A stretch of DNA of 64,000 nt from Paragordius varius. Taxonomy: Eukaryota; Animalia; Nematomorpha. The stretch lies in contig OZ176052.1 of the NCBI GenBank assembly GCA_964247055.1, forward strand, positions 11,842,001-11,906,000. Direction: 5' to 3'. Shown here piece after piece: positions 8,501 through 57,302 of the stretch (within the stretch, counting starts at the first letter, position 1; each line of letters opens with the position of its first letter). The translations under genes were made by a program, and so were the position numbers. The notes below the pieces were generated by a model. The model was given only the letters and a program-made list of their open reading frames with translations, did no database searches and was not told where the DNA came from.

Positions 8501-11500
8501 ACCAAATAATTATTATGGTACGGACAGTACCAAAAGACTTTTAACAGGAAGCCCCAATCCCCGCGATTCCGATCGAGAAGGAATAAATAATAGGTTTGTT
8601 GTTTAATTCGGATAACATTATAATTCAATTATTGTGTTCTGTTTGATATTGTCAGATATTTACTACAGTAGATACGAAATTAATGAATAAAATCACGAAA
8701 AAAACCGAAATTTTATATACCAACTTGAAGCCAATAATATTTTTTTATATTATAGTAAATGAAATCTGACCATATTTAATCAAAAACTAGCAATTAACTC
8801 ATATATATATATATATATACCCTTTGATGTGGTTTCAATACATTACCATTTATTTGTTTTTTCATGCAGAGGTAGCTATATTCAATTTGATGATACTGTT
8901 ACCAGCACACCTTCGAAACTATTAAATGGACAAGCGAACAATGGCTTCAAAAAATTATCTCTACTTATTTCTAATAATGCTACAAATACGCAACAATCGA
9001 ATTCGCCGGATCAAGCCGAGCTAGAGCAACTTTTATCTACCGATGGGTAAATTCTATGGAATATTTTTATTCGGCTACTTGCCTATAAAGTGTTTATAAC
9101 TTATTTAATAATCCCATATTAAATAGTTGCGTTTTTTTCTAAAAAATATTCACTTGAGCTCACATTCTGACATATTTTACTGACTTTCATCAAACATTAA
9201 AAAATATTATATTTGTATCCACTTTATTTAGATCAAGCAAACGAAAGTTCGGCTCCTAATTAAAATTACCGAAAAACAATGTATTATGCTTAAAATAAAT
9301 TATATAGGGCCCAAAACTATATCTTATTCCAAACGATTAACTATTTCAAAATATGATAACTGCACAGTGAATTACACATTTTAGAACAAATAAATCTTGA
9401 GATTGGTTGTAATTTATAATGAGGATTTAACATCCTATTTTATTCATTTCGAAATTGACACATATCCATTAAGTGGTAAGCCATATCTTGGAATGTTTTA
9501 AGATGTCCAATTTTTATGCAGTTAATCACAACGGTTGTGGCGCTATTTCGTGTGGTACTTGCATGGTGTATAAATATGAAAAAAATATTCTTTATGTGCA
9601 AAAATAAATGCTATCAAGCATACGATCTATTCTAAAACAGTCTAAAGTTTTAAAAAATATATCCAACTTATTTATAAAATCTGATAGTCAATCTAGTAAT
9701 GTATTTTCACAAATTACCGAAAATGGCACAAGTAGAGAAACTCTTTAAATCACCATTTTCTTTTTTACAATTTAATTAATTATTTTATTCATCGCAATAT
9801 TTTTAACTTTTTATAGGTTAAAAAGTTTGGGCGCAACCGTTTTCTCCAACAATAAAGCCAATTATGACTTCATCCCACCCATAAAATATTCAAGATTGGC
9901 TTCACATATAGAGCATTTCAAAGAAAATAACAATCAATTGTTTAAACAAGAATATCAGGTAATAATATTTACAGGAAAATTGAAATTATAAAACACCAAT
10001 ATAGGAAAAGACTACCATACATATTAATTATTAATTTTTAATATAACTTATAAAAAAGGGATAAATATCTAAGTTGATATACATTCTATATATGTAAATA
10101 TATTATTTATGAAGAAAAAATCAAGCTATTAAAAAGTATGGCTATCTTTTTTAAAAATATATGTCTATTATTTTTTACGTTTTGTCTTAAATTTTTAACT
10201 ATTTTTTGAGAATTTTTATTCTGTTTATGCTCTTGGATATTGCTTTATGATAAAATAAAAGCATTTTTGTACATATTAAAGGTTATCGATCCTAAAAGAG
10301 AGTTTTCAAGTCATGCTAGTTTTGCGCCTCACAACAAACTAAAGAACAGATATGCTAATGTTGTGGCCTACGATCATTCTCGTGTCATTTTGAATTATAG
10401 TAAGGCAAATTCTGTCCCTGAAAATACGCATGATTATATAAATGCTAATTACATTGATGGATTCAACAAAAAGAAAGCGTACATTGCCACCCAAGGTAAA
10501 TTATTCATACAAATTTTGTGCAAGTTTTATTATAAGAAGCGATCATTTAATTAACAGATCTTTAGCGGCTACGCTAATGATTTTATCATTTCCAAGCAAA
10601 AATTTTAAAAAATTAATGCTATTTAATTATAATTACATATAAAAAATTTACACAATACCATAAAAATATTAAATTCTATTTTAACAGCCACATCAATAAT
10701 TCAATATAATATTTCAAAATATTATTTATAGCTAAATATCGACATTTATTTAACTGTGTTTTTAGGTCCCTTGCCTGAAACTCTATGGGATTTTTGGCGT
10801 ATGATTTGGCAACAAAAAAGTCACACCATAGTTATGTTGACTAAATTGGAGGAACGAAATCGCATAAAATGCGACAAATATTGGCCGGACCGTGGCACTG
10901 TTGATACGTATGAAGAGACGCTTCATCAAGAATACAGCACTTTAGGTTCACAGAAAAAGTAGATTTTCTTTTTTAATTTGAATTTAAAATCATATTTTTG
11001 TTAAAAATGCTTTTTTATTTAAATTTTAAATATAATTTTTAAAGGAGATAGTTTCAATCTTCTTATTTAAAAAGAGTGGTAAAGGTCAATTTATTTAGGA
11101 TAAATTTGTAAAGTGCACATAAAATTAAATATAGATATTATTTAAAACATTTTATTTCATTATTTGTTTATTATCTCATATATTTTTATTATACATCAAA
11201 TTTACATAGCAATGAAGAAATATTTCAAAATGTACTGGTTGACAGTTTGGAATTAGCCACTTACACTATCCGAACATTTTGTCTGATGAACGTAAGAATT
11301 AAATTATTAGTTACCTATTACAAATAAGTTCCGGTTACTATATTAATAAAAGCCAGTATATATATTTATATATATATAGCCAAATTTCAATAAAACAAAC
11401 CTTTTGTACTGTTGGAATAAAAATATATCCATAAAGGGCAATATTTTTAATGGTTAAATATCTAATATTTTTTTAGTTTTTCCTTTGATTTAAAACTTAT

Positions 11501-14500
11501 TTATATGATTTTTTATATTGACCCACATTAAATTTGTTTAGGTTCGAACAAAGGAGAAAAGAGAAATTAAGCAATTTCAATATACGGCTTGGCCTGACCA
11601 CGGAGTTCCCGAATATCCGACACCTTTTCTCAATTTCGTTAAACGTGTCAGAGCCTCAAATCCTATTGATGCAGGACCGATTGTTATTCATTGCAGGTTT
11701 TTCAAATTAACTTTAATAATTTGTCCTAAATTATTGTGATGATAACTACTGTTGAAATAATAGAAATATTATTTCAATGGTTTTGTTACTTGAAAACAAA
11801 GTGTCCATATTTTTTAAAATATAATTTATTGGTATAATATAATATTATTACGAACATTTTTAATAATATAATATGATTTTGACAAAAATAGAAATAAAAA
11901 ATAAGGCTAAATAATTGATGTTTTTACTTATCATAATTATAGCGCTGGTGTTGGTCGAACAGGCACCTATATTGTTGTGGACATAGCTTTAGATCAATTA
12001 GAATCAGTAAGAAACGATCAAGAATTTAATGATGCAAATAATAATACCAATTTAAAAGACAACTTGGAAATAAGCGTTTTTGAACAGGTAACCAAATTGC
12101 GCTGTCAACGAAATTTCATGGTACAAACAGTGGATCAATACATTTTCATCTATGATTGCATTTTAGGTATATCACTTGATATATTGGTTTTTACCGAAAT
12201 AAAATTATAATTTTTTAATTTTTGATTTCACGTACTAATACAAATGAATGTCCATTGATTTTATGCAAAATATTTAATATTTAGAGGGTTATGAAACCGG
12301 TAACACAGAAATATCAGCCATAGATTTATTTGGTCACATTCAAACGTTGGAAAGTTTACCTCTGAACAAATTTACACCATATACTCAAAATAGCGATTTT
12401 ATGTTGGGCATTGAAAAAGAATTTAAAGTATTCATCAACATATTTAATTTATAATTATATTAATCGAATTTTAAAATATTTTAAATATATTATTTATTGG
12501 TTTTTTTATATTGAAATAGAACATCTCAAAAGGTATTATGCAATCGCACGGACAAAAATTTGTTCATGCAACGGAGTTTGTAAATAAACGCAAAAATCGA
12601 CAATACAATATTTTGCCTTATGAATACAATCGGGTTTATATATCGCCGCTACCAGGAATCGAAGGATCAGATTATATTAACGCCTCTTTTATTGATGTAA
12701 AATTTGCCATTTAATTGTTATAAATTTAATATTTTCCCCTAATGTTAATACAATAAAATTCGTTTGGATTATTAAAGACTGTAAAGTGTATAATTTTTTC
12801 ACCATATTTGTTTCTTTTTAAAAATAATATTTATCCTAAAAAATTTTAGGGTTATAAAGAAAAAAATGCGTACATCGCGACACAAGGTCCTTTGCCAGAA
12901 ACGATAAATGATTTTTGGAGAATGCTTTGGGAACATAACTCAAATATTATAGTTATGCTCACTCAAATTAATGAATGTGGAAAGGTAATATATTTAATTA
13001 TCTTTGATAATTTAATCAAAAGTGTAAAATATAAAAAACCATTGTGTTCAAATACTCTCCGTTTTATTAGCACTAGTTTCAATATTAATTCATTTATATA
13101 CCATTTTTTACAATTTAAAGGCGAAATGTGCCCCCTATTGGCCAGTGGATGGCCCAATGCGATATGGGAGATACATTGTTGAACCAGTGGCCGAATATTC
13201 GATGCCACAATATATTTTGCGAGAATTCAAAATTACTGATACCAAGCCTGCCAATGATTTCATTATGAATGCCACACTAAGGCGACAACAAAGAATGACA
13301 ACCACGGCCCCTCGACCATCCAACAATGATAATCAAATTTCGGCATTTCAAACAGCAAATTCTCCAAACAATAGTTTAAGATTCGAAGGGGAGGACCATC
13401 ACAATGAAAACATGCCAATTTTTGAGGACATTATGGCTAAATCTATGAGCAATACTCAGGAATATGGCGTAATTAATCATTTATTAAGCATTTAATCGAT
13501 TGGTTTAAGTACACAAAACTATTTTTGTTTTGGTTTTATTTTTTTTACAACTAACGAAAAAATTATATACGAATACATTTAACATATAATGAGCACAAAT
13601 TGATGTTTGATAATTTTAATTTGCCCACCATCACAAAATTTTATAATTTAGATGGTAAACTCTTCATACTGTAACAATGGGTTATATTCATCCGCCTATT
13701 CCTCCAACTCTAGCGTTGTTGGGTCAAACCCTTTAAATTATATACCATCCACATCTCCCTCAAGAACTATTCGACAATTTCATTTTGATTGTGCCTCCAA
13801 TTGTCTTGATGATTTTGGGGGAACATTACCCCATCGAAATCAAGTAATATTATAGATGAAAATGCTTTAAAAAGATTCTGTAAATACAGGGCTAAATAAT
13901 TGACAATTATATTTTTTAAAAAAATGTAGGGAGTTACGGTAATCCGATAAATTAACATATTACCAAATCTATTATTATTTAGGTAAATCATCAAATTCCC
14001 TTAACACCCCATCACAACACATTACGACACTCAACTCGTAATTTAATGCCACTTTATCCTTCCTCCGAAAGATTGCAATTGAATGATTTCATGTTGCATG
14101 AAAATGAAACAGATTTTGAAAATATGATTAATCCAAAACACAGGGTATGTTTTATCATTTTTAGTGCATATTATGACAAAAGCGATTCTAGATATTTCAT
14201 AGAAAGTGGTATAATTTCACAAGTCATTTTGGAAGTTATATCACAGGGCATTGAATCCCTCGCCACTGATATACCTTACTATCAATTTTATTTTACATTT
14301 GAATATAATTCTAAATAATATATAATAATTATAAGTTAATTTAGCCCAAAGATTATTTTTAGCGTAAATTTGAAATTGGAATAAATAGGCGAATGGTGGT
14401 CATTCACTATTACCTATTTTAAATTTTATGAATTTATCCTTTTTTTACCGGCACAAAATGCGTCAAAGATATAAAGTGTTACAAAAGGGTATGTTTTATC

Positions 14501-15335
14501 TTTTACCATCCTTTTCATAATAGACCACGACAATTGGTGGTGGTACATTATCATCGGTCTCTTCGAGTACTTTGCCTCACAATCACCATTCATCATCCTC
14601 CATGCTTTTACTTTCTTCATCCAAGTCTTCGAATTGGCATTCTCCCATCCCTCTACTGACCACATCCAATAATACTCACAAAGGCGTTGTTGTTCCATCA
14701 TCGTGGAAGGAACAGCTGGAAGAAAATTTCTTGGAACTCATTGGACAAGTCCATAAAACAAAAGATCAATTTGGGGCCGATGGCCCAATCACTGTTCATT
14801 GCAGTAATGGGGCAGGTTTAACGGGTGCGTTCTTAGCCATCGCTATAACAGTTCATCGAATGAAATACGAGAGTAAAGTTGATTTAGCACAAACTGTCCG
14901 ATGGTTACGACAACAAAGACCAGGAATGATTCAAACTCTGGTATGAATCTAATTGTATTCGTTTAACTCTCGATTAAATTAATTACAAAATTAATGGAAA
15001 AAACTAAAAAACATAATTTATCATTGGCACAAGTTATGATCTCAAGGCATATTTTTTGTTTGCACGCATATATGTATTTATAAGTATTTAACCCTTAAAT
15101 TTTCGTATATATTAGTAATTTACCTTTCTTAATAAAATATGTTATGTTTTTTTAAAAAAATTATTGATTGCATCATACGGTTTTTTTTAATAATTATCTT
15201 ATTATTGTGCTACTTAAAAATCATGTTAGTATAAAATAAATATATATATAAATTTTAATGATATAGAATCAATACCGATTTTGCTACAAAGCTGCCTTAC
15301 AATATCTCAAATCGTTCGACATGTATGCACCATAA
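2538..15335 (+). CDS. Lar: LAR-family (type IIa) receptor protein tyrosine phosphatase, 5'-partial: FN3 repeats, TM helix, tandem PTP D1/D2
   Basis: Hand-spliced GT-AG exons with consistent phases: 2538-2665, 3067-3250, 3366-3590, 3655-3747, 3814-3950, 4033-4201, 4277-4419, 4614-4788, 5269-5408, 6146-6452, 6709-6947, 7270-7515, 7798-8198 ([25 protein letters not shown]), 8390-8593, 8870-9046, 9817-9958, 10282-10495, 10766-10958, 11210-11291, 11542-11696, 11943-12166, 12285-12427, 12520-12696, 12850-12984, 13121-13468, 13652-13843, 13983-14144, 14524-14940, 15268-15335 (stop). FN3 motifs such as [10 protein letters not shown]; D1 motifs [24 protein letters not shown]; D2 LAR signature [22 protein letters not shown] and C-terminus [19 protein letters not shown]. 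Ig exons not seen, presumably upstream of the window. Confidence 0.93.
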
Positions 15336-15549
15336 ATATCTCGAAATAACTCACACATGCATTTAGGTGCAATCATATAATATATAAATTGATTTATTAC
15401 TACAATTAAAATATATTATTATATGTAACCTATTTCTAAAATCATGAAATCTAATAGCTTTAATAATAAATTTTGATACATATATGAAAATTGCATTGAT
15501 AGTTTGAGCATTTAACTGCTTATTACAAAAATTATATAATTAAAAAAAA

Positions 15550-17756
15550 TTACCAATTATAATTTTTATTCTTGCCACAATTAATAGTTATAAATTCTTG
15601 AGCTTGGTCTTTTATACGCGTTTTAAGATTGTTATTCATGTTTCGAAGATTTTTATACATAAAACCTATTCGACCACTTCCCGCAAGTAATTTTTCATGT
15701 TTCATAAAAAAGTTCCAATAAAGGAAGTTATAAGGACAAGCATATGGCGATTTTTTACCATACATTGTAGATTTTTCGTTTAGAGAAACATTCTCATTAT
15801 CGCTCTCCGTCTTTTCCAATTTTATGTGTTTAGTTGCATTAATTTTTGATTGTATAGAATTTTTGATCTTTCTCTTTGAGGATCCATCCGTGTCTGATAT
15901 AGGCTCCATTTTTTCACCTGTTTCCTCATCAACTTTCAATGAAACATTGTAGTAACAAGTTTTACAATAATCTGACATTTTATTAATATAACTCCCGGAT
16001 GAAACATAAGGCTTTGATGCTATAATTCCACCATCCGCGTATTGTGACATTCCCAAAGTATTTGGCATTTCGACCCAATCGTATGCATCAGCATAAACCG
16101 CTAAATACCATTCACAAACTTCGGATGGTTCAATTCCTAGCAGCAAACAAATATTCCCTGTAATCATAAGGCGCTGTATGTGATGAGCATACGCTATTTC
16201 ATACGTTTGTTTAAGTACCTATGAACAATGATAACAGTTCTAATTCACTCTCAAACAATTTCAAATTCACCCTTAAATAAATATTGTGTTTTTTAAGATT
16301 AAAAATTATCTTTATTTTTCAATTTTTTTAAAATATGAAATTCTGTTTAAAATTAATATAAGTCTGAAAAAATAATAAACTATGTAGCAAAAATTTATTT
16401 TATCTTAATGATGATTAGCCCGAAAACACATAACTTTTAGGGTGAATTTGAATTGTAAATGGAATATATAGCAAATTTTTAATTTAGGTTACCAAGTATT
16501 TATTTCTAAACGACGCATACCTGATTGACACAATTCATGCGACACACCACACCATTAGGTTTGGTTAAATCACCGATTTTGTAATGAGGTACAGGGAGCC
16601 AGAAATAAGCAGGTAAATGGTTATGAGTATCTAATGCATTCATGGAGGCATATTTTGGCATATGAGTCAGATAAATTAAGCGCATATATTCCCTCCATCC
16701 CAAAATTTGTCTTATGTAACCTTCAACGCTGTTTAATGATAATTTAGACTTGCAGCTTGCGTGATATGCCTTTTCGACCTGATAACAAACGTCTTTAGCA
16801 TTTAACAATCCGTTATTTAGGTACATCGATATAACGCTATGGAAAAGGTGATATTCATTAGTTTGCATAGCATCTTGATAGTCACCAAACGTAGATAATT
16901 TATTTGATAGAAATTCTCTAAAATGGTCCATGGCTTGAGTTTCCGTTACGGCATATTGAAAATGTGCCATCTTGGCAGATTTGTGATTCTCGTTATAAGC
17001 CAATCCATAGTAATTGGCGAAATATTTGTCGACGAGTTGAATTGATTGTTCCGTTATTTTGTCCGTTTTAAACGTATTATCATTTTTATACAACTTGGCA
17101 TCCGAAACTGTGATGTGATTCAAAGATTTTCTATTCATTTTATCGAAATTCCATTGATTTCCAATGGGATCTTTTCCGTTAGCTTGCATTAGAATTTTGT
17201 GTTGAACACGCATTTGACGGTAAAAATTTTCCATTCTAATGTGCTGTTTATGCGTAGATTTCCATGTTAAAAATTCATCGGGGTTACAAAAAAATCGATT
17301 ATCTTCTAACAACACTAATTCTGCAGTTTTATTAATACTTTCATGCCATTCCATGATATCCTCTAAGATATGGTATTCGTTTGGTTTCGTAACTACCAAT
17401 TGCTCAAAATTATATTTGGGATGTATAAATTTTTTCATAATATGTTTGAATGAATAATCCCCATAATTATGTTTTTTATTATCCATGTCATGATTAGCTT
17501 GCAAAACATTTTCCAAGTCTAGGTAAAGTGAATTATAAGTATTGTTTGAATTCAGATAGTTTTGATAAAAGTGTCGATAGCAACTTATTATATAAGCAAA
17601 TTTAAGTTTGTGATGCGGAGCATTGGAAAACCATTTGGGACATTCCATGCAAACAATCAAATCTGTGGATTTTTCATAATTTTGGAGGGCAGATATATCC
17701 TTGCACAATTGATCGTGTAAGAGTAAGACAATGGATCGCAATGTTTTAGGTGTCAT
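15550..17756 (-). CDS. phrB: Prokaryotic-type (6-4) photolyase/cryptochrome with 4Fe-4S cluster (FeS-BCP family, Agrobacterium PhrB / Rhodobacter CryB-like), 2 exons, about 634 aa
   Basis: Exon 1 17756-16521 and exon 2 16218-15550 are joined by a phase-0 GT-AG intron (CAG|GTATGC ... CATAG|GTA). Family motifs LLHDQL, HHKLK, RMENFYRQMR, WNFD, FGDYQDAM, HSVISMYLNNGLL, EGYIRQILGWREY, MNC, AYAHHIQRLMITGN, WYLAVYADAYDWVEMPNTLGMSQYADGG, SKPY, SDYCKTC and ACPYNFLYW match PhrB/CryB as recalled. Confidence 0.95.
16237..16468. mobile_element. TA-flanked MITE family A, copy inside the photolyase intron
   Basis: Ends resemble TTCAAATTCACCCT ... AGGGTGAATTTGAATTGTAAATGG, shared with the copies at about 24.0, 32.8 and 48.6 kb; left end decayed. 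Confidence 0.7.
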
Positions 17757-23994: not shown

Positions 23995-24227
23995 TACACC
24001 ATTGACACTTCAAATTCACCCTTGAACAATTAAAATTCACCCTAAAATAAATTATATGTTTTTTAAAATAAAATGAAATTTCGTTTTAAATAATAAACTA
24101 AGGCATAAAGATATATTTCGTATTCATAGGTTATATTAGCCCGAAAACATAATATTTATTTTTAGAGTAAATATGAATTGTTCAAGGGTGAATTTGAATT
24201 CAAGGGATTTGAATTGTAAATGGTATA
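23995..24227. mobile_element. MITE family A copy
   Basis: Inverted ends TACACCATTGACACTTCAAATTCACCC ... GGGATTTGAATTGTAAATGGTATA with internal AATTCACCC repeats. Confidence 0.75.
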
Positions 24228-25160: not shown

Positions 25161-26963
25161 TAAGGTGACCGGTTATCCCATTTTTCCTACTCTGTCCCGC
25201 GTCCCGCTGCGTTTTTTAAATGTCACGCTTTTTCACGATTATATTAAAAAAAAATATTTTTAATACATTTAAATTTTTTATAAAAAAATAATTTTTTTAT
25301 CCGTTTAAATTTTTTATCATTAGTTATCTTTAAAATCTATATCAATTTTAAATTAATTTTTATTTTTAAATTAAAAATATTTATTTTTTTCGAATTTATA
25401 TCATATGATTATACACTTTGCTTCCTACTCCTGCTGCCAACATTATCAAAAAGACAAATTAAAATCGGTAGCTTATACGTTTACTCCAGAAAATTAAGGT
25501 AATATAATATTGTTTTATACTAATATTAGTTTAAAATTATGAGTACAAAAAGAGGTTGTAAATTCAACGATGAATTAATGAAAGAATTTACCTTTATCAA
25601 AAAAACGAAGAATGAATCATCTGTCAAATGTTCTTTATGCGAGGGGAATTCACCCTAGATGGCGGCAAGCATGATATTACAAAGCATATGGAAACACAGA
25701 AACATAAAAAATGTTTAGATATGGCGGCATCTTCTTACAAAATGAGCGATTTTTATCGAAAAACCGCTTTTGGAGAGGAAGAAAATGATTTGGCATTAGC
25801 CGAAGGCGTTTTATCTTTTCACGCCGTTAATCACAATCATTCCTTTAGATCTATGGATTGTACCTCACAGGTTATTCTTCCCTTATTCAATAAAAAATTT
25901 ACATATGCCCGTGTACAAAGGCTGAAGCCATTGTATGCAATGTCCTTTCGCCACATGCATTTTCTGAAATACAAAAAGATTTGCTGAAAACAATTTCATA
26001 TCGCTATACTCTGATGCATCAAATCACGAGGAAACAAAATTAATACCACTTTAATAAGATATTTTGTGATCCATAAACCGGAGTAAAAATTAAAATTTTA
26101 GATTTTATTTCTCTACTCGGTGAAAATTCCGATAATTTTTACTTCAATAATGAATATTCTAAAAATTTTAAAGACAAAATCATCGCATATTGCGTGACAA
26201 CACCAATACGAACTTCGGTAAAAAAGCAAGGAGGAGAACAATATTTTTATAAATTAGCAGATAATCTTAATAAAAATATTATTGGCGTTGGGTGTGCAGC
26301 GCATATAATACACAACGCTATTCAAACAGCTGCTGATTTGTTACCCCTAGATGTAGAAAATGTAGTTGTTAAAATATATTCCTATTTTTATATATACACG
26401 GTAAGCGTTGAAACGTTTAAGGAATTCTGTGAAAACGCAGAAGTTCAATATAAAAAAATACTCGGATAATGTAAAACTCGTTGGTTAGCTCTTCTGCCAG
26501 CTATCGAAAGAATTTTAAAAATGTATGATCCTTTAAAATCCTATTTTTTATCACAGGACAAATGTCCTACAACTTTGAAAAAGTTTTTTGAAATTTAAAT
26601 CTTTAAAAATACGGTTAGAGTTCCTTCACTGGGTAGAGAATGAGAGTGGGAAATAGTTTTGTGCATCAGAATATAGCGATGTGAAATTTATTTTATGCAA
26701 ATCTTTTCCATTTCAGAAAATGCATGTGGTGACAGGACGCATACAATCGCTTCATCCTTTGTTCGTGCACATGTAAATTTATTGAATCAGGTACGAATAA
26801 CCTGAGACCAAAGTAAAAAATATATTTTTATATTTATGATGTATTTATGTTAAAATAAATAAATATTACAGCAAATTTTTTGTATAAAATTTTTTGGTTG
26901 TACCTTCCTATGCCCCCCCCTTTATCAGATTTACCCGCTTCCTTCAAAAATCTGGTCACCCTA
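25161..26963 (+). mobile_element. hAT DNA transposon (Blackjack-like TIR), defective
   Basis: TIRs TAAGGTGACCGG / CTGGTCACCCTA; identical 8-bp TSD CCTATATA at 25153-60 and 26964-71; frameshifted transposase from ATG 25539 (BED-finger-like VKCSLCE...HMETQKH; GVGCAAHIIHNAIQTA; KTRWLALLPAIERILKMY) truncated near 26600. Confidence 0.9.
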
Positions 26964-31280: not shown

Positions 31281-34200
31281 ATGACGGTTTATGATTTGGG
31301 AACTATAATTGATAGTCAATCCCATAATATGTCTATTCAGAAAGGATTATCTTCAACAACCATTCTTACCCTACAAAGTTTGGAAGAAAAACGTATGTTA
31401 TTATTTTGATTTTAACCCTTTAGAGTAGGGATATGACCAACACGCTGCCAAATATAAATATAGGGGCATTTATAATTATTTTATAATTTTATTAGATTTA
31501 AACACAAAACTGCGTAATAAATGACAACTATCATTTTTTAATAATTTTTATCTAGTTTGTTACCAATAGGAAAAACTTACTCAAAAAATTTGTTGAAACA
31601 TCAATTCTATTAAATTTTTTAAGCATATTATTCAAAATGGGGAAATCGTATTTATTTGGTCCTTCTCAAAATATTTTGCAGGTGCACAAAATATCTCGAA
31701 GGGCCGCATGTTGGACGCCCTTAGAGACTTTCGGGCTAAAATGCATACTGACTGTAAAATTTGCAAAGATAACCGAAAGATTTATCCCTAACAATCTCAA
31801 AGGTCCATATGACCAATTATATGGCACTTTAAAGTTTTTCCGGTTATTTTTATACGCGGTTACAATCATAATCATAAATGCAATCGGTCGAACTCAAGCT
31901 AGTGATCTCCAATTTGTTTTAAAAGATTCTGTTATTTAAGTTTAATTAAACAACATGAAAACAACTCAAATATCCGATCAAAGTAAAGTTGTAAATAAAT
32001 CATCAAGTAAAAATTAATGTTACCATTTAATATACTATATTTATATATTTATCTTATATTTTAGCAAACTTTAGCTATGTTATATTCAAAAGCTTAAATC
32101 CGAACCAGGATAGCAAAGACCACACAGGTAAAAGAAGTTTTATTAAAACTTTTTATTACTACAAAAAGTAAACTAATTTAAATGATTATATGTGAAATTT
32201 TTCATCAACTAAGTTTTCAAAATATATTAATATCAATAAAGTAATGTATTTAATTTACAAAAAAGATTTTGTCCACTCTTTAATCGGTGATGCTTTTAAC
32301 AAATTAATATCCATTTAATTGAGTAACATTTATGTTTTCATAGCATTTTAACTTTTAAAATAGCAGTCCTTTATAAACTCACAATAAATTAGCAAATGGA
32401 TAAGTATATTTCTATGAAAATATTGAAAGGCTTTCAACATGAGCGACTTTATTAACACATAATTTAAAAAAGCCATCTAATTAACTTTTCTATAATTTTA
32501 ACCATTTAAATAAATCGAAACAAGCAATCAGTAGTTTTTAACTGCAATCAAATTAATATGCTTAGTTGAGAACTTAAATGGAAAAACTAAAATATATATA
32601 TTTTATTTTTTAATTCCATTATACATTGAGCATATAATGTTGATGAGTTAGCTGTTTTGAAATTTAGGATAAATTTATTTTTTTTGTATTTGTCAAACTA
32701 TTAATTTGTAAATAAAGCAGTCCAAATTATGTTAGGACGATTAGGGTCCGATTGATGTATTATTATTTTCATTATGTTTATAAATACAAATATATACCAT
32801 TTACAACAAATTCACCCTTAATTCAAATTCAGCGTCAAACAATTTCACCCTAAAAATAATTGTTTTTCGGGCTAATAACACTAGACAACAAATTTTAACT
32901 TTTTTTTAACTGCCATTCTTGTAAATTTAAAATTTATTTCATTAAAGTACATAATTAGTATATCTGAAAAGAAAATTGGTCTTACATGGAAGAATTTTTT
33001 TATATTAGAGTTTATCGATAATTTGCCCAGATTTAACATTAAACTCGAAATTTCGAAAATTTAAAGCTTTAGATATGAAGCCATGTATTTTATATCATTC
33101 GAAAGAGCGCAAAAAACTGCATCTTTTAAATGGTAGTAAGTCATTTAAATCCATCGGTAAAAGTTATTTGGATTTAAATAGTCAAAATTTTCAATCCTTA
33201 AATAAGTCAAGAATTTTCGCAGACAAACTAATTTGAAGATCATATAAATTATTTTAATATAATTATTAGGGTTATATTAGTATTTAATTTAAAAAATGTT
33301 TGGAAAAGCTTTTGGTTTGCTTTTTTAATAAAAATTATTTTATCATAGATATTTTACCTAGTGGATACTAAAATGCATAGTTATAACTGTAAATTTATTA
33401 CATAATGGCTATAAAAGATCAAAAATACCTTAAACTTTGTTTTTATCTTTAAATCTTCGAAATTATCAGCCTTGTAAAGAAAATAAATTAATATTGATGA
33501 GATGGTAATATTTAAAAACAAAAAACTTAAAAATGGCTGTTTTCAGTGACATAAAAGCAATAAAAAATCTTTTAATCAAAAAAAACTTTCTTGTGTTATA
33601 TTTTTTGGACATTCATCTCCATCTAAACAAAGTTTGAGCTATTTTCATCCATTAGTTTTAAAAATATAATAATTAAAAAAAATGCTCTCGCTTCGCGCGT
33701 TTGTCGCTCTTTGTGTCCAATATTAACTGTCGATGTAATACATATTAGTATGCATTTTATAGAGTTTTTATTCTTTCGAATGATATATTACAAATGGGCA
33801 TTACTTGTGTATTTTCAAAGAAAAATATTTTTTAGTAAAATTTTGATAAAGAGGGCGCATAATCAAAAAAATCAAATTATACAAAATTCTTCCAACGAGT
33901 TATAATTTTTATTTCAGATTTACTGTTAAATTGATATTAAATATCAAAAAATGCAAAAAACTCGAGTGGCAGAAAAATTTGTTGTCTAGTGTAAGAATAT
34001 GAAATATATCTTTATGGTATAGCTTTTTTTCATTATTTTAATTTTTAACGAACATGATATAAAAATATAAAAATATAGGTGTTTTTTATAAAAAAAATTA
34101 TTTTATTTGTTCGAGTGTGAATTTAAATTGTTTAAGGATAAATTTGAAGTAATTGGTATATTTGCACATAAGAGAGATAAATATAAATAGGTATCAGAAA

Positions 34201-36412: not shown

Positions 36413-37036
36413 ATGGACGGTAATCAACACACAGCCGAAATACCAAGACAAAGGCTAAAATTTGAGATTGGTGTAGGAATTACGAACGCTTTTATGATTA
36501 GTGGTTTCCACGTCCTAACTGACATGAGCTTTGATGCCCTAGAAAAAATTTGGACAAACTGGAGTGGCGCTCTACTGCTAAAATGTTTAACGCAAAAAGC
36601 TTTCAAGCTCCGGGAAATGAGTCTGTTTCGCAACAAATTAAAGTACAATGAAAATAAAAGTTTTAAAGAGGTCTTGGGCTATAAGTATAGTCACCCCCTC
36701 CCTGATAGCCCAATCAATGAATCCAAACATGAACACTTTAATTACAACATATCAGACTCTTATTTATCACATCTAAATTTGGCTGAATGCCATATCATGT
36801 TCGGGAATGAAAATTTAGCAGCCGAACCGTTTAGTAATGAGAAAAATGATTTCAAAATTGGAGAAAATCAAGATTCGTCCTTTTCTTATGTGTTTGTAGC
36901 CTACTTTGAAACATTGTTAACCAATATAGTTTCAGCATTAAACTTTTTTGAGGAATTCAAATTTAAATCGAGTAAAGGTAACATTTCACTATACAAACCA
37001 TTGGCAATCCAACAAAACAAAAATGCTCTGATATAA
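36413..37036 (+). CDS. Unassigned 207-aa ORF, possibly the terminal exon of an unknown gene
   Basis: Long stop-free frame in AT-rich DNA with coding-like composition; preceded directly by an acceptor-like ATATAG; convergent with ECHS1. No homology recognised. Confidence 0.5.
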   Translation: MDGNQHTAEIPRQRLKFEIGVGITNAFMISGFHVLTDMSFDALEKIWTNWSGALLLKCLTQKAFKLREMSLFRNKLKYNENKSFKEVLGYKYSHPLPDSPINESKHEHFNYNISDSYLSHLNLAECHIMFGNENLAAEPFSNEKNDFKIGENQDSSFSYVFVAYFETLLTNIVSALNFFEEFKFKSSKGNISLYKPLAIQQNKNALI

Positions 37037-48614: not shown

Positions 48615-48896
48615 TATACCATTTACACTTATTCACCCTTAAACGATCCAAACCTTTGAACAATAATCCCCCCTCGAACAATTCAAGTACACCCTAAAAT
48701 AAATTGTGTATTTTTAGGATTAAAAATTACCTATATTTTAAAATTGTGATACTAAAAATATAATAAACTAAGCCATAGAGATATATCTATTAATAATAAG
48801 TTATATTAACCCGAAATCACAGTTTATTTTTAGGGTGAATTTGAATTGAGGGTGAATTTAAATTGTTCAAGGGTAAATTTGAATTGTAAATAGTAT
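48615..48896. mobile_element. MITE family A copy (best preserved)
   Basis: TATACCATTTACACTTATTCACCCTT ... AAGGGTAAATTTGAATTGTAAATAGTATA with internal repeated GGGTGAATTT units. Confidence 0.8.
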
Positions 48897-49030
48897 ATAA
48901 ACAGCTCTTCGAAGCGGTTTATAAAAAGTGGACCAGGAACCGGGCTGGTTTAACGGTTTCGAAACCGGTACTTTACATTAACACTGCATAATAAGAATTT
49001 TAATATATGTTAGATATATACTATTAGCAC

Positions 49031-52729: not shown

Positions 52730-54813
52730 ATGATCACGGTTGAATATTTTAGTTTGTTATATTCGAGGTGTGGAAAAATAGTAAGTTTACAACGATGTAC
52801 CCTACTTATATCCGTTATAATACTGTATTGTTACGTCGATATTTGGACTAATTCGCATTATGAAGAACTTTCTGGCCTTATTCCAGGTAATGTTTCAATA
52901 TTATTAACTAAATAAAGTATTTAGATAAAATTATAACCAAATTTATTCTTAATTATATTAATTCAATACAGAAACGAGAGCTATTTATGGGCCATTTCGA
53001 TTTTTGATCGCTGAAAGGAAATTTACATAACTGTAGCCTGGTTGAGAGATTTTTCATTTTATTAATTGCATATATTTAAAAGAGCGCTGTATTTTTTTTC
53101 ATAAATCTAAAAAATTTACCTAAAAATAAAAAAAATGATCATACATGGCTACAGACCTGTAAACCAAATCCCCTTTTATCCATTTAAAATACCGAAAAGG
53201 CCATAATAAGCTCTAGTTACTGTAATGAAAAAATATTAGTTAAGAGAACAAACAACGATTGTTTGGATCCAGAAACAATACAAGAACTAAAGAAAATACC
53301 CTCTATGTGGTTTTCCACAAATTTGCCAACCAAATATATTGAAAGAAATCAGCGATTATCCCGCAAATGTGCGATACTTTATCCATTTATGAAGAAAAAT
53401 GGGAGCACAAAAGCTAACCACAATTTCTATAATATATTTGTGGAACCGAAACACAGTGGACTTCTTTATTGTACGGTGTATAAAGTTGCATCTACAAATT
53501 GGTTAAAAATGTTAATGCTATTCTCTCAAACTAACCATTGGAATATGTTTAAGCAAATGTTTGCGACTATAGAATCGGAAGTGAGCGAAAACTCACCCTA
53601 TTATTTTGATTGGATTAACAATGTAACCGATAGTATTTATATGGATGAAGCTCATTACAACAATAGTTTGATTGGATCCCAAAGCTGGCCTCATGGCTGG
53701 TCAACCGATTGTCTAAAGCGTTTGATGGCAAATTTTTTGTCCTTTTTTTTCGTTCGACATCCCTTGGAACGTCTTGTATCAGCTTATTTGGATAAATACA
53801 CCTATGCTCCCAGCGCATCAAACATGTATTACCAACAACATATCGGAACTCTGATTATACGTAAATTTAGGCCCAATGCTAGCGCCATGTCACTTAAATT
53901 GTAAACTTTTGTTTAATTCGTATTGACGTTTATAGGTAAACGATGATCTGGCATAATAAAATGGAATTAATCTCTTTATAAACTTAAGTGATTTACAGTT
54001 ACCACAAGGAATAACTTAAAGTTATTTCACAAAACAATATAAAACCGTTAAGGCTTTTTATTAGGTCAGACACCATACTAATATCTTTGTTGTGTGGCTT
54101 AGTAAGAAACCGACCATCATATTTTAAATAATACTAAAAAATTTAATGTGCAAATGCAATTGATTTTAATTTACACATTAATTTTGAAACATCGTAATTT
54201 ATAAAAATGTTATAAGTTAGATAGTGATACTATTCAAATGTCAATTGTCAATCATATTATGTGCTATTAAAGATATAACTATTCAAAATATTTAAAATTT
54301 TTTATTTGTTATCATTAAAATATATTTGTAAAATATAATTTAATAATTTATAGTGGACATGATGTAACCTTTTCAGAGTTTATTGATTGGGTATTGTATG
54401 AATACAATGTAACTAATGGTAACATAGATCGGCTTTATAAACCCATTTCACGGGAATGTCGCCCATGTGAAATACGCTTTCACATTTTGGGTCGCTATGA
54501 AACGTTTGATCAAGACGTAAATACCATTTTTAGGGCAATTAATGCCATTAGAATCCAGCAAGATATACAAAATAAACACCATATAACAAACGAATATGAA
54601 CAACAACCCCATTTTTCTTTTCCTAATTTAAGACACGATTCTTTAACTAGACACACGCGAACAAAACATGAAATCGCCGTAAAAATGTTTCAACAAATAG
54701 ATCGAGAAAGAGTTAAACGTATAATTGATATTTATAAGGAAGATTTTTATCTATTTGATTATGATTATACGGACTATATATCAGACATGGATATTACTTC
54801 TCCTGCGGAATAA
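52730..54813 (+). CDS. Golgi carbohydrate sulfotransferase (Sulfotransfer_2; CHST8-14/HNK1-ST family)
   Basis: Exons ~52730-52886 (type II TM anchor), ~53240-53900 and 54354-54813. 5'-PAPS motif YCTVYKVASTNW; 3'-PAPS motif FFFVRHPLERLVSAYLDK; TFSEFI; C.PC.IRFHILGRYETF.QD; YKEDFYLFDY. Start codon uncertain. Confidence 0.9.
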
Positions 54814-55613
54814 TCAAAAAATTAGCTTATTTTTAAATCTTTCAATTTCTGATGGACAGGACATTTATTATAAAAAACAATCCTATTTCGCTCTTAAACA
54901 ATCGCAAAATATTTTGCTTGTGTAATTCTAGACATTCTGCTTGTTCCAAAAAATGGATTTATTAAAATTATGATTGAATTGTATTAACTAAAATTTTTGG
55001 CCTCAATATCCATTCTCCACTATCTCACAATAGTTATAACGGTATACATCTGTTCTTTGCGGTGCACACACACACACGCATATTATAACTATGAATATAC
55101 GCAAATACAATAACAATAATTTGTTTATATAGATAGATATAAATATGAATGATAACAATTGATTTCTTATTTATGCGTATTTCTTATGTTAGTTTGTTTG
55201 TATTTGATGAGCTTACTTACTTACCCCCTTTATTTATTGTTGCTTGCTTGACATTAAACTTTAAATAAACCTCACGCTTTTTTTATAAATTTAACACAAT
55301 ACCTACCTTATCAAACCTTATCTCTTTGTTTTCAAATCCAAAAAGTTTATCGTCGCATCACCAAAATTTTTTATTGGAGATTATGATTATTTGGGAAGAA
55401 TATCTTTATATTTATATTCTTTAAAGCGATGCAATTTGTCATACATGTTTAATGTTATAATTATTATCTATAATTGCTCAAAGACCGTAACAATCAACCC
55501 TTTATCATGATTATCATTTAATAATCCAAGCCCAAATTTTTGAAGGGTAACCAAAAATGATTTTTTTAAATTATAATGAGTTATTTGTTTGAAACATCAA
55601 CAAAAAATTGATT

Positions 55614-57302
55614 ATGCTAATGATGAATTTTGATAACGGGTCAGCTTCGACGATGACCTCAATGTCCAAATTGAAAATTTATAAAAATATTATAGCGCTT
55701 AGTACGGCGTTTTTCCTGCTTTTTTCAGCTTTTCAAGCCGTTTCTACCCTACAAACCAGCATTAATGCCACGAAAGGGTTAGGCTCCACATCGCTAAGTG
55801 TTATCTATGCTTTTTTCATATTCTCCTGCTTATTCCTTCCTGAACTCTTGATTTCCTACATCACTGTGAAATGGACCCTAGTCCTTTGCATACTTTTATA
55901 CACGAGTTTTATAGCTGCAAACTTTCATCCATCATGGTATAGTCTCATACCCACTTCTGCTTTGTTAGGGTTAGGGGCGGGACCTCTATGGACCTCCCAA
56001 TCGGTGTACATTACGAAAATGGGCAAAAAATTAGAACAACTTGCCCGTGGATCTAAAAGCCAAATTATAGATTCTGACATCCGAAAACATTATGAATCAC
56101 CCATGGATGAATCATTAAATAATTCAAATAGAAAGAATAGCAATACCATGTCCTCCACAATCAATCCAGAAAAATCAAATCAACATTCCATTACACCCTT
56201 TTTATTTGGTATATTCTATGCCTTTTTCCAAGCTGGCTCCATCCTTGGCCAACTTATATCATCGCTCACGCTTAAGAGTGACATTCAAATTGTTAACCAA
56301 AGCTTACCTCTTCCACTCATAAACAGAACTTACATAGTAACTCAAAACACAGCCGTTTGTGGCCCCAAATTTTGTTCTAAAACTCTAAAACCAGCAACAT
56401 CAGATTCAACTGATATATCACGTTTCCATCCTAGCAAGCAAAAACTGAATATATTGTATTCAGTTTACACCGTTTTAGCTTTAATGGGTGCCGCTACAAT
56501 AGTATTCCTCCTAGATAACTTGAGTCGTCAAGAAGTAAGTAATAATAAAGCAATCCCACGTGCTATTTCGGATGAGGAGTGCTCCGTTACCCCCATAAAC
56601 CCGAGCCAAAATACTCAAACGACCGGACAACGTATTCTCAAAATGTTTTTAGCTACCCTGAATCAAATGAAACTCCCTCGTCAATTATTACTTATACCAC
56701 TTTCCATCTACAGTGGACTAGAACAAGGATTTATGTCAGCCGATTACACTAAGGTAAGAATTTTAATGACTGTTTTATTCAAACTATTTAAATTGATTAT
56801 ATGACATTTCTACTGATTTAAGTAAGATATGCCGTAAATTTTAATTACCATGAAAGGTTTTGTTTGTTTTAGCTTATTGGATCTCTCTCTCATCAATTAA
56901 AATCCTTTTATTATACCATAAAATAGTTTATCGCTAACTCAATAAAATTAGAAAATACAATAAAAAATGTATGCAAGGTTAAGGTTTTCAGTTTTTTTTA
57001 ATAGTTTTTTTATAACTTGTATATAAAATTAAATTTTGTATGATTATGTAATATATAATAATAATAATTAGGTAAAATCAATACATAAAATTTTTATTGT
57101 TATTTATTCCCTCCCACAAATTTGATTCGTTCTCAACTTTTGCATGATGTAAGAATTCTTTTTATTATTTATTTGTAAACAATATTGTAACAATGTAATA
57201 TTTATTGGGGGTGTGTTCATCAATATATGTATATATATATATATATAAATAATGTATCGATAGATGTTTCCTAAATAAAGAAAAAGTATTCAATATATTA
57301 TA

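Follow-up and report, generated by a model that had tools for sequence, protein, structure and literature searches.

A bacterial-type iron-sulfur photolyase gene in the genome assembly of the hairworm Paragordius varius, probably acquired by ancient horizontal transfer

Introduction

How does a photolyase of a class that is regarded as prokaryotic come to lie in the DNA of an animal, and is it kept there as a working gene? The question is raised by a photolyase gene of the hairworm Paragordius varius (Nematomorpha), which lies on contig OZ176052.1 of the assembly GCA_964247055.1, within a stretch of 64,000 nt (contig positions 11,842,001 to 11,906,000) that is called the window throughout. Coordinates are counted from the first letter of the window. 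The iron-sulfur photolyases and cryptochromes of bacteria (FeS-BCPs) are treated as a prokaryotic class in the literature searched (PMC7736829, PMC8476157), and within the photolyase/cryptochrome superfamily they are often put close to the root. In the literature searched, we found no report of an FeS-BCP from an animal or from Nematomorpha, and no eukaryotic member of the class.

We consider it likely that the locus is a nematomorph nuclear gene that goes back to an ancient transfer of a bacterial FeS-BCP/CryPro (6-4) photolyase, that it has been adapted to its host, that its core is under selection, and that its product would work in a manner similar to PhrB of Agrobacterium fabrum.

Results

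Gene structure and family membership

Two minus-strand open reading frames (ORFs; 16506-17756 and 15550-16167 in the ORF list) underlie the gene, the features of which are compiled in Table 1. Sequence reading places the donor GT at 16520/16519 and the acceptor AG at 16220/16219, so that the coding part of exon 2 runs from 16218 to 15553 and is followed by the stop codon at 15552-15550. The spliced frame codes for 634 aa, and its only stop is the terminal one. The G+C content (GC) is 33% for the coding sequence, with 31% at third codon positions (GC3), and 27% for the window; an open frame of 634 codons in DNA with such a low GC is far beyond chance. Once the intron is removed, the alignment to PhrB continues without a gap, MNC corresponding to PhrB residues 348-350, VNQ to 351-353, and the residue with which exon 2 opens to 354. 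Without splicing, exon 1 would end with CVNQVCVV at a stop eight codons past the first Fe-S cysteine, and the catalytic half would be lost.

Sequence matches confirmed that the predicted product belongs to the FeS-BCP/CryPro (PhrB/CryB) family, i.e. to the prokaryotic-type (6-4) photolyases. Exon 1 matched DPRP (PF04244) as its sole Pfam model (E = 7e-41, 140.9 bits versus a cut-off of 22.1), and neither exon had a match in NCBIfam. In the comparison with solved structures, exon 1 matched A. fabrum PhrB (4DJA) with E = 1e-52, and exon 2 matched R. sphaeroides CryB (3ZXS) with E = 2e-46 and PhrB with E = 1.6e-44, residues 1-93 of exon 2 being gapless against PhrB. Altogether, eight solved FeS-BCPs were matched, with E values of 1e-52 to 3e-30 for exon 1 and of 2e-46 to 7e-39 for exon 2. 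The Pfam models DNA_photolyase and FAD_binding_7, which together with a Trp triad or tetrad characterize the animal (6-4) photolyases and CRY, were unmatched, and all of the nearest solved structures were FeS-BCPs.

The roles of single residues presumably are those of their PhrB equivalents, and alignments of 18 and 30 homologues show that most of the functional residues sit in invariant columns. This is true for the four [4Fe-4S] ligands (PhrB C350, C438, C441, and C454, here C409, C497, C500, and C573) and for the catalytic histidine pair with its leucine in the motif HHIQRL (PhrB H365, H366, and L370, here H424, H425, and L429). The photoreduction chain of PhrB (W342, W390, and Y391) is represented by W386, W449, and Y450, and the lesion-site tyrosines Y424 and Y430 by Y483 and Y489. 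The N-terminal domain, in which PhrB-like photolyases have a pocket for a lumazine (DMRL) antenna, could be aligned to PhrB from residue 8 on, with HDQL in place of the GDQL motif. Two further invariant columns hold D205 (WNFD) and D295 (QDAM), the equivalents of the PhrB pair D179/D254, which is involved in Mg2+-stimulated lesion binding (10.1101/366252).

A sequence-only reading of the locus had described, at 15550-17756, an ORF of about 634 aa with one GT-AG intron, had assigned it to the PhrB/CryB family, and had named PhrB residues that are all kept. The coordinates, the length, and the intron turned out to be correct, the family assignment is borne out by the E values given above, and each of the named residues is found in the printed alignments under PhrB numbering.

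Probable residence in animal DNA

In the assembly, the photolyase gene and a LAR-type receptor tyrosine phosphatase gene are arranged tail to tail, and their stop codons are 213 nt apart. The last LAR exon encodes the typical C-terminal tail of LAR-type receptor phosphatases. A linkage of the two genes is supported by the assembly and by the continuous depth, which is even across the photolyase gene and its flanks (about 500-1200 in run X1). Contigs of run X3, which carries the label of a second organism, are about 98% identical and take in the two exons as well as the flanks on either side. In its relative codon use, the photolyase gene correlates with the host (r = 0.94; six ORFs and a segment of a LAR exon), and its GC3 lies within the host range of 24-36%. 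At 55608-56804 (plus strand), the window contains an ORF for a UNC93-like protein of 398 aa, which is 53, 46, and 44% identical to three proteins of Gordionus sp. (Nematomorpha), while the next best match has 34% identity. This neighbour puts the host close to Gordionus.

The position of a LAR-type gene next to the photolyase stop, AT-rich codons like those of the neighbours, and the low likelihood of a contaminant contig had also been put forward from the letters alone. All three are upheld by the values above and by the phosphatase domain matches in Table 1; the spliceosomal intron and the host transposon within it (see below), the codon use, and the even depth, in which no coverage mismatch was seen, argue against a contaminant.

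Relatives of the protein and phylogeny

A word-based protein search yielded 3459 matches, the best 120 of which were 379-542 aa long (most of them about 500-540), 34-40% identical, and bacterial wherever they were named. An exhaustive HMMER search of 1.84 billion cluster representatives yielded 2201 matches, none with more than about 40% identity over the full length; no protein among 15 billion exceeded this value, and every named relative was bacterial. Neither the best 120 word-search matches nor the exhaustive matches included a protein of Gordionus or of another animal, although the annotated proteins of Gordionus are in the database. Among GTDB species genomes, the 80 best loci were bacterial without exception, and 76 of the 78 classified ones belonged to Pseudomonadota, the remaining two to Chlamydiia and Micavibrio, respectively. 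The look-alikes in the ESM Atlas were all from Bacteria. Taken over the word-based, exhaustive, GTDB, viral-contig, and ESM Atlas searches, no relative was closer than about 40% over the full length, and fragments of higher identity carried no informative names. The contigs inspected for the nearest matches had bacterial gene neighbourhoods, and that of the best match carries a cytochrome oxidase operon.

In a careful tree (IQ-TREE, LG+C20, 84 rows, no eukaryotic FeS-BCPs included), the photolyase falls into a polytomy inside a Proteobacteria-dominated clade. The searches and the tree support the view that the gene would have come from bacteria by horizontal transfer. Such a transfer would lie far enough back for the gene to have ameliorated fully, gained an intron, and taken up inserts.

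A quick tree had suggested a sister group of three unnamed, AT-rich sequences (P0202/P0211/P0221; Shimodaira-Hasegawa-like approximate likelihood ratio test value 94). This grouping dissolved to the polytomy in the careful tree, and the approximately unbiased test did not reject it (p = 0.39). The contig of P0211 (L082:3838-5454; GC 35.5%) is bacterial and encodes AcpS, a 5'-3' exonuclease, and a TIGR04132 protein. TIGR04132 is the model of a putative folate-metabolism gamma-glutamate ligase, its short name begins with "intra", and we take it to be tied to intracellular bacteria. A donor among intracellular bacteria is therefore a lead and not a result.

A small bacterial clade of AT-rich FeS-BCPs (P0211, P0331, P0332, and P0221) has a Lys/Ser-rich insert of its own (KSGKNPKKSVKSKRSS...), which is located at a different site, before VEGF(V/I)RQ.

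An origin from giant viruses was considered and rejected, as the FeS-BCP-like genes in IMG/VR contigs of giant virus metagenome-assembled genomes (GVMAG) lie on a very long, distant branch. The proteins from these bins (L090-L094) are very divergent and form a long-branched clade of their own.

Selection on the coding sequence

Among the variants listed between the window and the contigs of runs X1 and X3, there are at least 22 coding differences, 15 synonymous and 7 non-synonymous, which gives an indicative ratio of non-synonymous to synonymous polymorphism (pN/pS) of about 0.11. An indel among the variants listed for the coding sequence keeps the frame, as it inserts 3 nt in a low-complexity stretch. 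These values support purifying selection on the enzyme core. An old horizontal transfer maintained under selection had been the central claim of the sequence-only reading, and it finds support in the bacterial identity of the named relatives, the nested position in the tree, the lack of a Gordionus orthologue among the matches, and the ratio of the variants.

Lineage-specific inserts and C-terminal tail

The insert of 60 residues between the third and the fourth Fe-S ligand is missing from all 30 aligned homologues (30/30). In an AlphaFold2 model of exon 2 alone (mean predicted local distance difference test score, pLDDT, 66.4), the insert has pLDDT values of 40-57. The segment from W386 to C409 comprises 23 residues versus 8 in PhrB. 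The protein ends with a tryptophan, which is found at this position in only 3 of 296 (1%) full-length bacterial homologues.

The targeting complex of the CIA pathway (cytosolic iron-sulfur cluster assembly) recruits cytosolic and nuclear Fe-S clients via a C-terminal tripeptide, [LIM]-[DES]-[WF], with the terminal aromatic residue as the dominant determinant (10.1101/2023.05.19.541488; 10.64898/2026.04.06.716496). Because CIA clients are recruited in this way, we propose that the Trp-ended tail might be a post-transfer adaptation for cluster loading through the CIA targeting complex, and that the loop with its basic patch, which resembles a nuclear localization signal (NLS), might be one for nuclear import.

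A transposable element in the intron

Most of the intron consists of a miniature inverted-repeat transposable element (MITE), of which homologous copies are found near 24005-24198 and 48664-48899. The motif of its terminal inverted repeats (TIRs) has 15 matches in the window, compared to 0.4 expected. In public runs, the word depth of the intron bins is 4.6e5-9.6e5 versus about 500-1200 in the flanks, placing the MITE family at roughly 1000-fold the single-copy level. Only 15 nt at the acceptor (16219-16233) and 34 nt at the donor (16487-16520) do not belong to the MITE. Because its homology ends at these distances from the splice sites, it appears more likely, albeit not settled, that the MITE landed in an older short intron of about 49 nt than that the intron had an introner-type origin.

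Additional copies or ends of this family (TIR TTCAAATTCACCCT...) were observed at 32790-32876, 34131-34148, and 14357-14374. One MITE end falls within a LAR intron.

Other features of the window

The membrane-distal protein tyrosine phosphatase (PTP) domain of the LAR-type gene (14572-14946, plus strand) has a signature that lacks the Arg of the canonical one. Like many D2 domains, it probably has no catalytic activity. Other host neighbours are genes for a carbohydrate sulfotransferase (Pfam Sulfotransfer_2; 53263-54813, plus strand) and for a DUF7153 protein (36413-37036, plus strand). Two adjoining ORFs at 25628-26469 (plus strand) have no Pfam match and resemble remnants of a transposase-related gene. 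Runs X6 and X7, which are labelled as two further organisms, contain 151-nt pieces that are identical to the photolyase locus at a depth of 2-3; these look like library carry-over or hairworm DNA in host samples rather than orthologues.

Table 1. Features of the photolyase locus and of the adjacent LAR-type gene (window coordinates)
Feature	Position	Strand	Basis
Photolyase gene, two exons, ATG to stop, 634 aa	15550-17756	minus	ORF list, sequence reading, homology
Exon 1 of 412 codons, with the alpha/beta (antenna) domain and the start of the helical flavin adenine dinucleotide (FAD) domain	16521-17756	minus	Pfam DPRP, PhrB match
Exon 1 content: D205, D295, W386, first Fe-S ligand C409	16521-17756	minus	alignment
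W386...C409 segment with lineage-specific insert of 15 residues and extra Cys C405	16530-16601	minus	alignment
GT-AG spliceosomal intron, 302 nt, 21.5% GC, GTATGC...TTCATAG	16219-16520	minus	sequence reading
MITE copy, 253 of 302 intron bases (84%)	16234-16486		homology to other window copies
MITE terminal inverted repeats, 18 nt	16260-16277, 16435-16452		94% complementary
Exon 2, 222 codons and stop: catalytic core, H424/H425, W449/Y450, Y483, Y489, C497, C500, C573	15550-16218	minus	CryB/PhrB matches
Lys/Ser/Glu-rich insert of 60 residues, aa 512-571, between Fe-S ligands 3 (C500) and 4 (C573)	15742-15921	minus	alignment
SKRKIK, aa 526-531, basic NLS-like patch within the 60-residue insert	15862-15879	minus	sequence
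C-terminal extension, about 12 residues (aa 623-634, INCGKNKNYNW), Trp last	15553-15588	minus	30-homologue alignment
LAR-type gene, PTP-domain exons	10240-14940	plus	Pfam PF00102 (Y_phosphatase), E = 9e-15, 8e-10, 1e-17
LAR-type receptor tyrosine phosphatase, last exon, stop at 15334-15336	15267-15336	plus	sequence reading

Discussion

According to the reading that we prefer, i.e. an ancient transfer from bacteria followed by adaptation to the host, the gene would have come to resemble the host in composition and codon use, and it would have acquired a spliceosomal intron, which was later invaded by a host MITE, as well as the peptide inserts. It would be expressed, and its product would bind its cofactors and repair (6-4) lesions. 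Blue or near-UV light would excite FADH-, directly or via an antenna that is located in the N-terminal domain. An electron would be passed to the flipped-out (6-4) photoproduct. H424/H425, with Y483 nearby, would help in the rearrangement, and D205/D295 would contribute Mg2+-assisted lesion binding. The flavin would be re-reduced by the chain W386-W449-Y450, and C409/C497/C500/C573 would hold a [4Fe-4S] cluster with a structural or DNA-sensing role. In addition, the basic loop may lead to nuclear import, and the terminal Trp may lead to recruitment by the CIA targeting complex. The extended proposal of a working animal Fe-S photolyase that has been "eukaryotised" by an NLS-like loop for import and by a Trp tail for cluster loading through CIA is tentative, and we regard it as possible rather than probable.

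Several observations weigh against the preferred reading. In the careful tree, no sister is supported and the photolyase lies on a long branch (1.18 versus a median of 0.43), which points to no particular donor or time of transfer. The pN/pS ratio is approximate, as it was derived from the variants listed. In the 30-homologue alignment, the hairworm protein has Ile at the position of GNF where Phe is nearly invariant. The tail, Y-N-W, fits the CIA consensus at the last position only, and the loop of 60 aa between the ligands together with the insert of 15 aa before the first ligand might disturb cluster binding. Among the contig pieces listed, which are short Logan contigs, none spans 15231-15413 or joins LAR to the photolyase, and the tiny public RNA runs listed contain none of the sampled words of the gene.

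Some of these points would fit a different function. The protein could be a blue-light sensor or regulator similar to CryB, or another Fe-S DNA-binding factor, and not primarily a repair enzyme. The top match of exon 2 is "Cryptochrome B" of R. sphaeroides, the inserts and the exchange of F to I in GNF could mark a changed function, and the long branch fits an altered constraint. However, the residues for lesion chemistry and lesion binding (H424/H425, Y483, and D205/D295) are kept under an excess of synonymous differences, and (6-4) repair is an activity of CryB as well, so that a sensor role and a repair role do not exclude each other. We rate a function that is mainly sensory as unlikely. 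A relic of a transfer that is decaying or silent, intact by luck and unexpressed, would explain the lack of sampled words in the tiny RNA runs, and the MITE in the intron can be read in the same way. In contrast, a frame of 634 codons stays open in DNA with 27% GC, all functional residues are kept, synonymous differences outnumber non-synonymous ones by 15:7 among the variants listed, and the indel is in-frame, which makes a mere relic very improbable.

The other two alternatives concern the origin of the gene. Vertical inheritance from an ancient lineage of eukaryotic FeS-BCPs that has disappeared nearly everywhere would be compatible with the unresolved tree around the long-branched photolyase and with many matches being unnamed metagenomic proteins, which could in principle hide eukaryotes; the tree also contained no set of eukaryotic FeS-BCPs, a further point on this side. 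However, all named matches are bacterial, the inspected contigs of the nearest matches are bacterial in context, no match comes from Gordionus or another annotated animal in the database, and the class is treated as prokaryotic in the literature searched (PMC7736829, PMC8476157, PMC9498864); we rate a vertical origin as improbable. Bacterial contamination or a chimeric misassembly could be suspected from the finding that no contig among those listed joins LAR to the photolyase. Yet the reading frame requires a spliceosomal intron with a high-copy host MITE inside, the codon use is host-like, the depth is even, and pieces of the locus are found in several samples and in the second labelled organism, so that an artefact is highly unlikely. 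Transfer from bacteria to a nematomorph nuclear genome with retention of a PhrB-like enzyme is the reading that we consider likely.

The gene would be the first iron-sulfur photolyase in an animal, and a selected, intron-bearing copy would extend the FeS-BCP class to Metazoa. It would be a clean and well-anchored case of a transfer from a bacterium to an animal in Nematomorpha, a phylum that has been known until now mostly for gene loss. It would also offer a natural experiment on the needs of a bacterial Fe-S flavoenzyme with three cofactors in a eukaryotic nucleus, i.e. import, cluster loading by CIA, and chromatin substrates, and the idea about the terminal Trp bears on the recognition of CIA clients.

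Comparison with known systems

Judged by its sequence, the protein is an ordinary family member, and the novelty lies in the host and in the eukaryote-style modifications. It shares with PhrB (A. fabrum, 4DJA) the two-domain architecture and the equivalents of the Fe-S cysteines, the His-His-x-x-x-Leu motif, the W/W/Y chain, Y424, Y430, and D179/D254. In contrast to PhrB, to which it is about 35-40% identical overall, it is encoded by an intron-containing gene in an animal nuclear genome, and it has the loop of 60 aa, the insert of 15 aa, a longer N-terminal low-complexity stretch, and the Trp-ended tail. CryB (3ZXS) and the solved FeS-BCPs 9HNK, 7YKN/8A1H, and 8IJY belong to the same family, but they are bacterial, about 510-536 aa long, and devoid of the inserts. 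The animal (6-4) photolyases and CRY (Eu6-4 clade) have the same expected substrate and, in outline, the same flavin photochemistry, but they represent a different clade of the superfamily and have no Fe-S cluster. Gains of photolyases by horizontal transfer have been described for other animals, i.e. cyclobutane pyrimidine dimer (CPD) class I in Nematostella and DASH in Bemisia (PMC9498864). As in these two cases, a patchy distribution of a photolyase class would be explained by transfer in the hairworm, whereas the classes involved in Nematostella and Bemisia are others.

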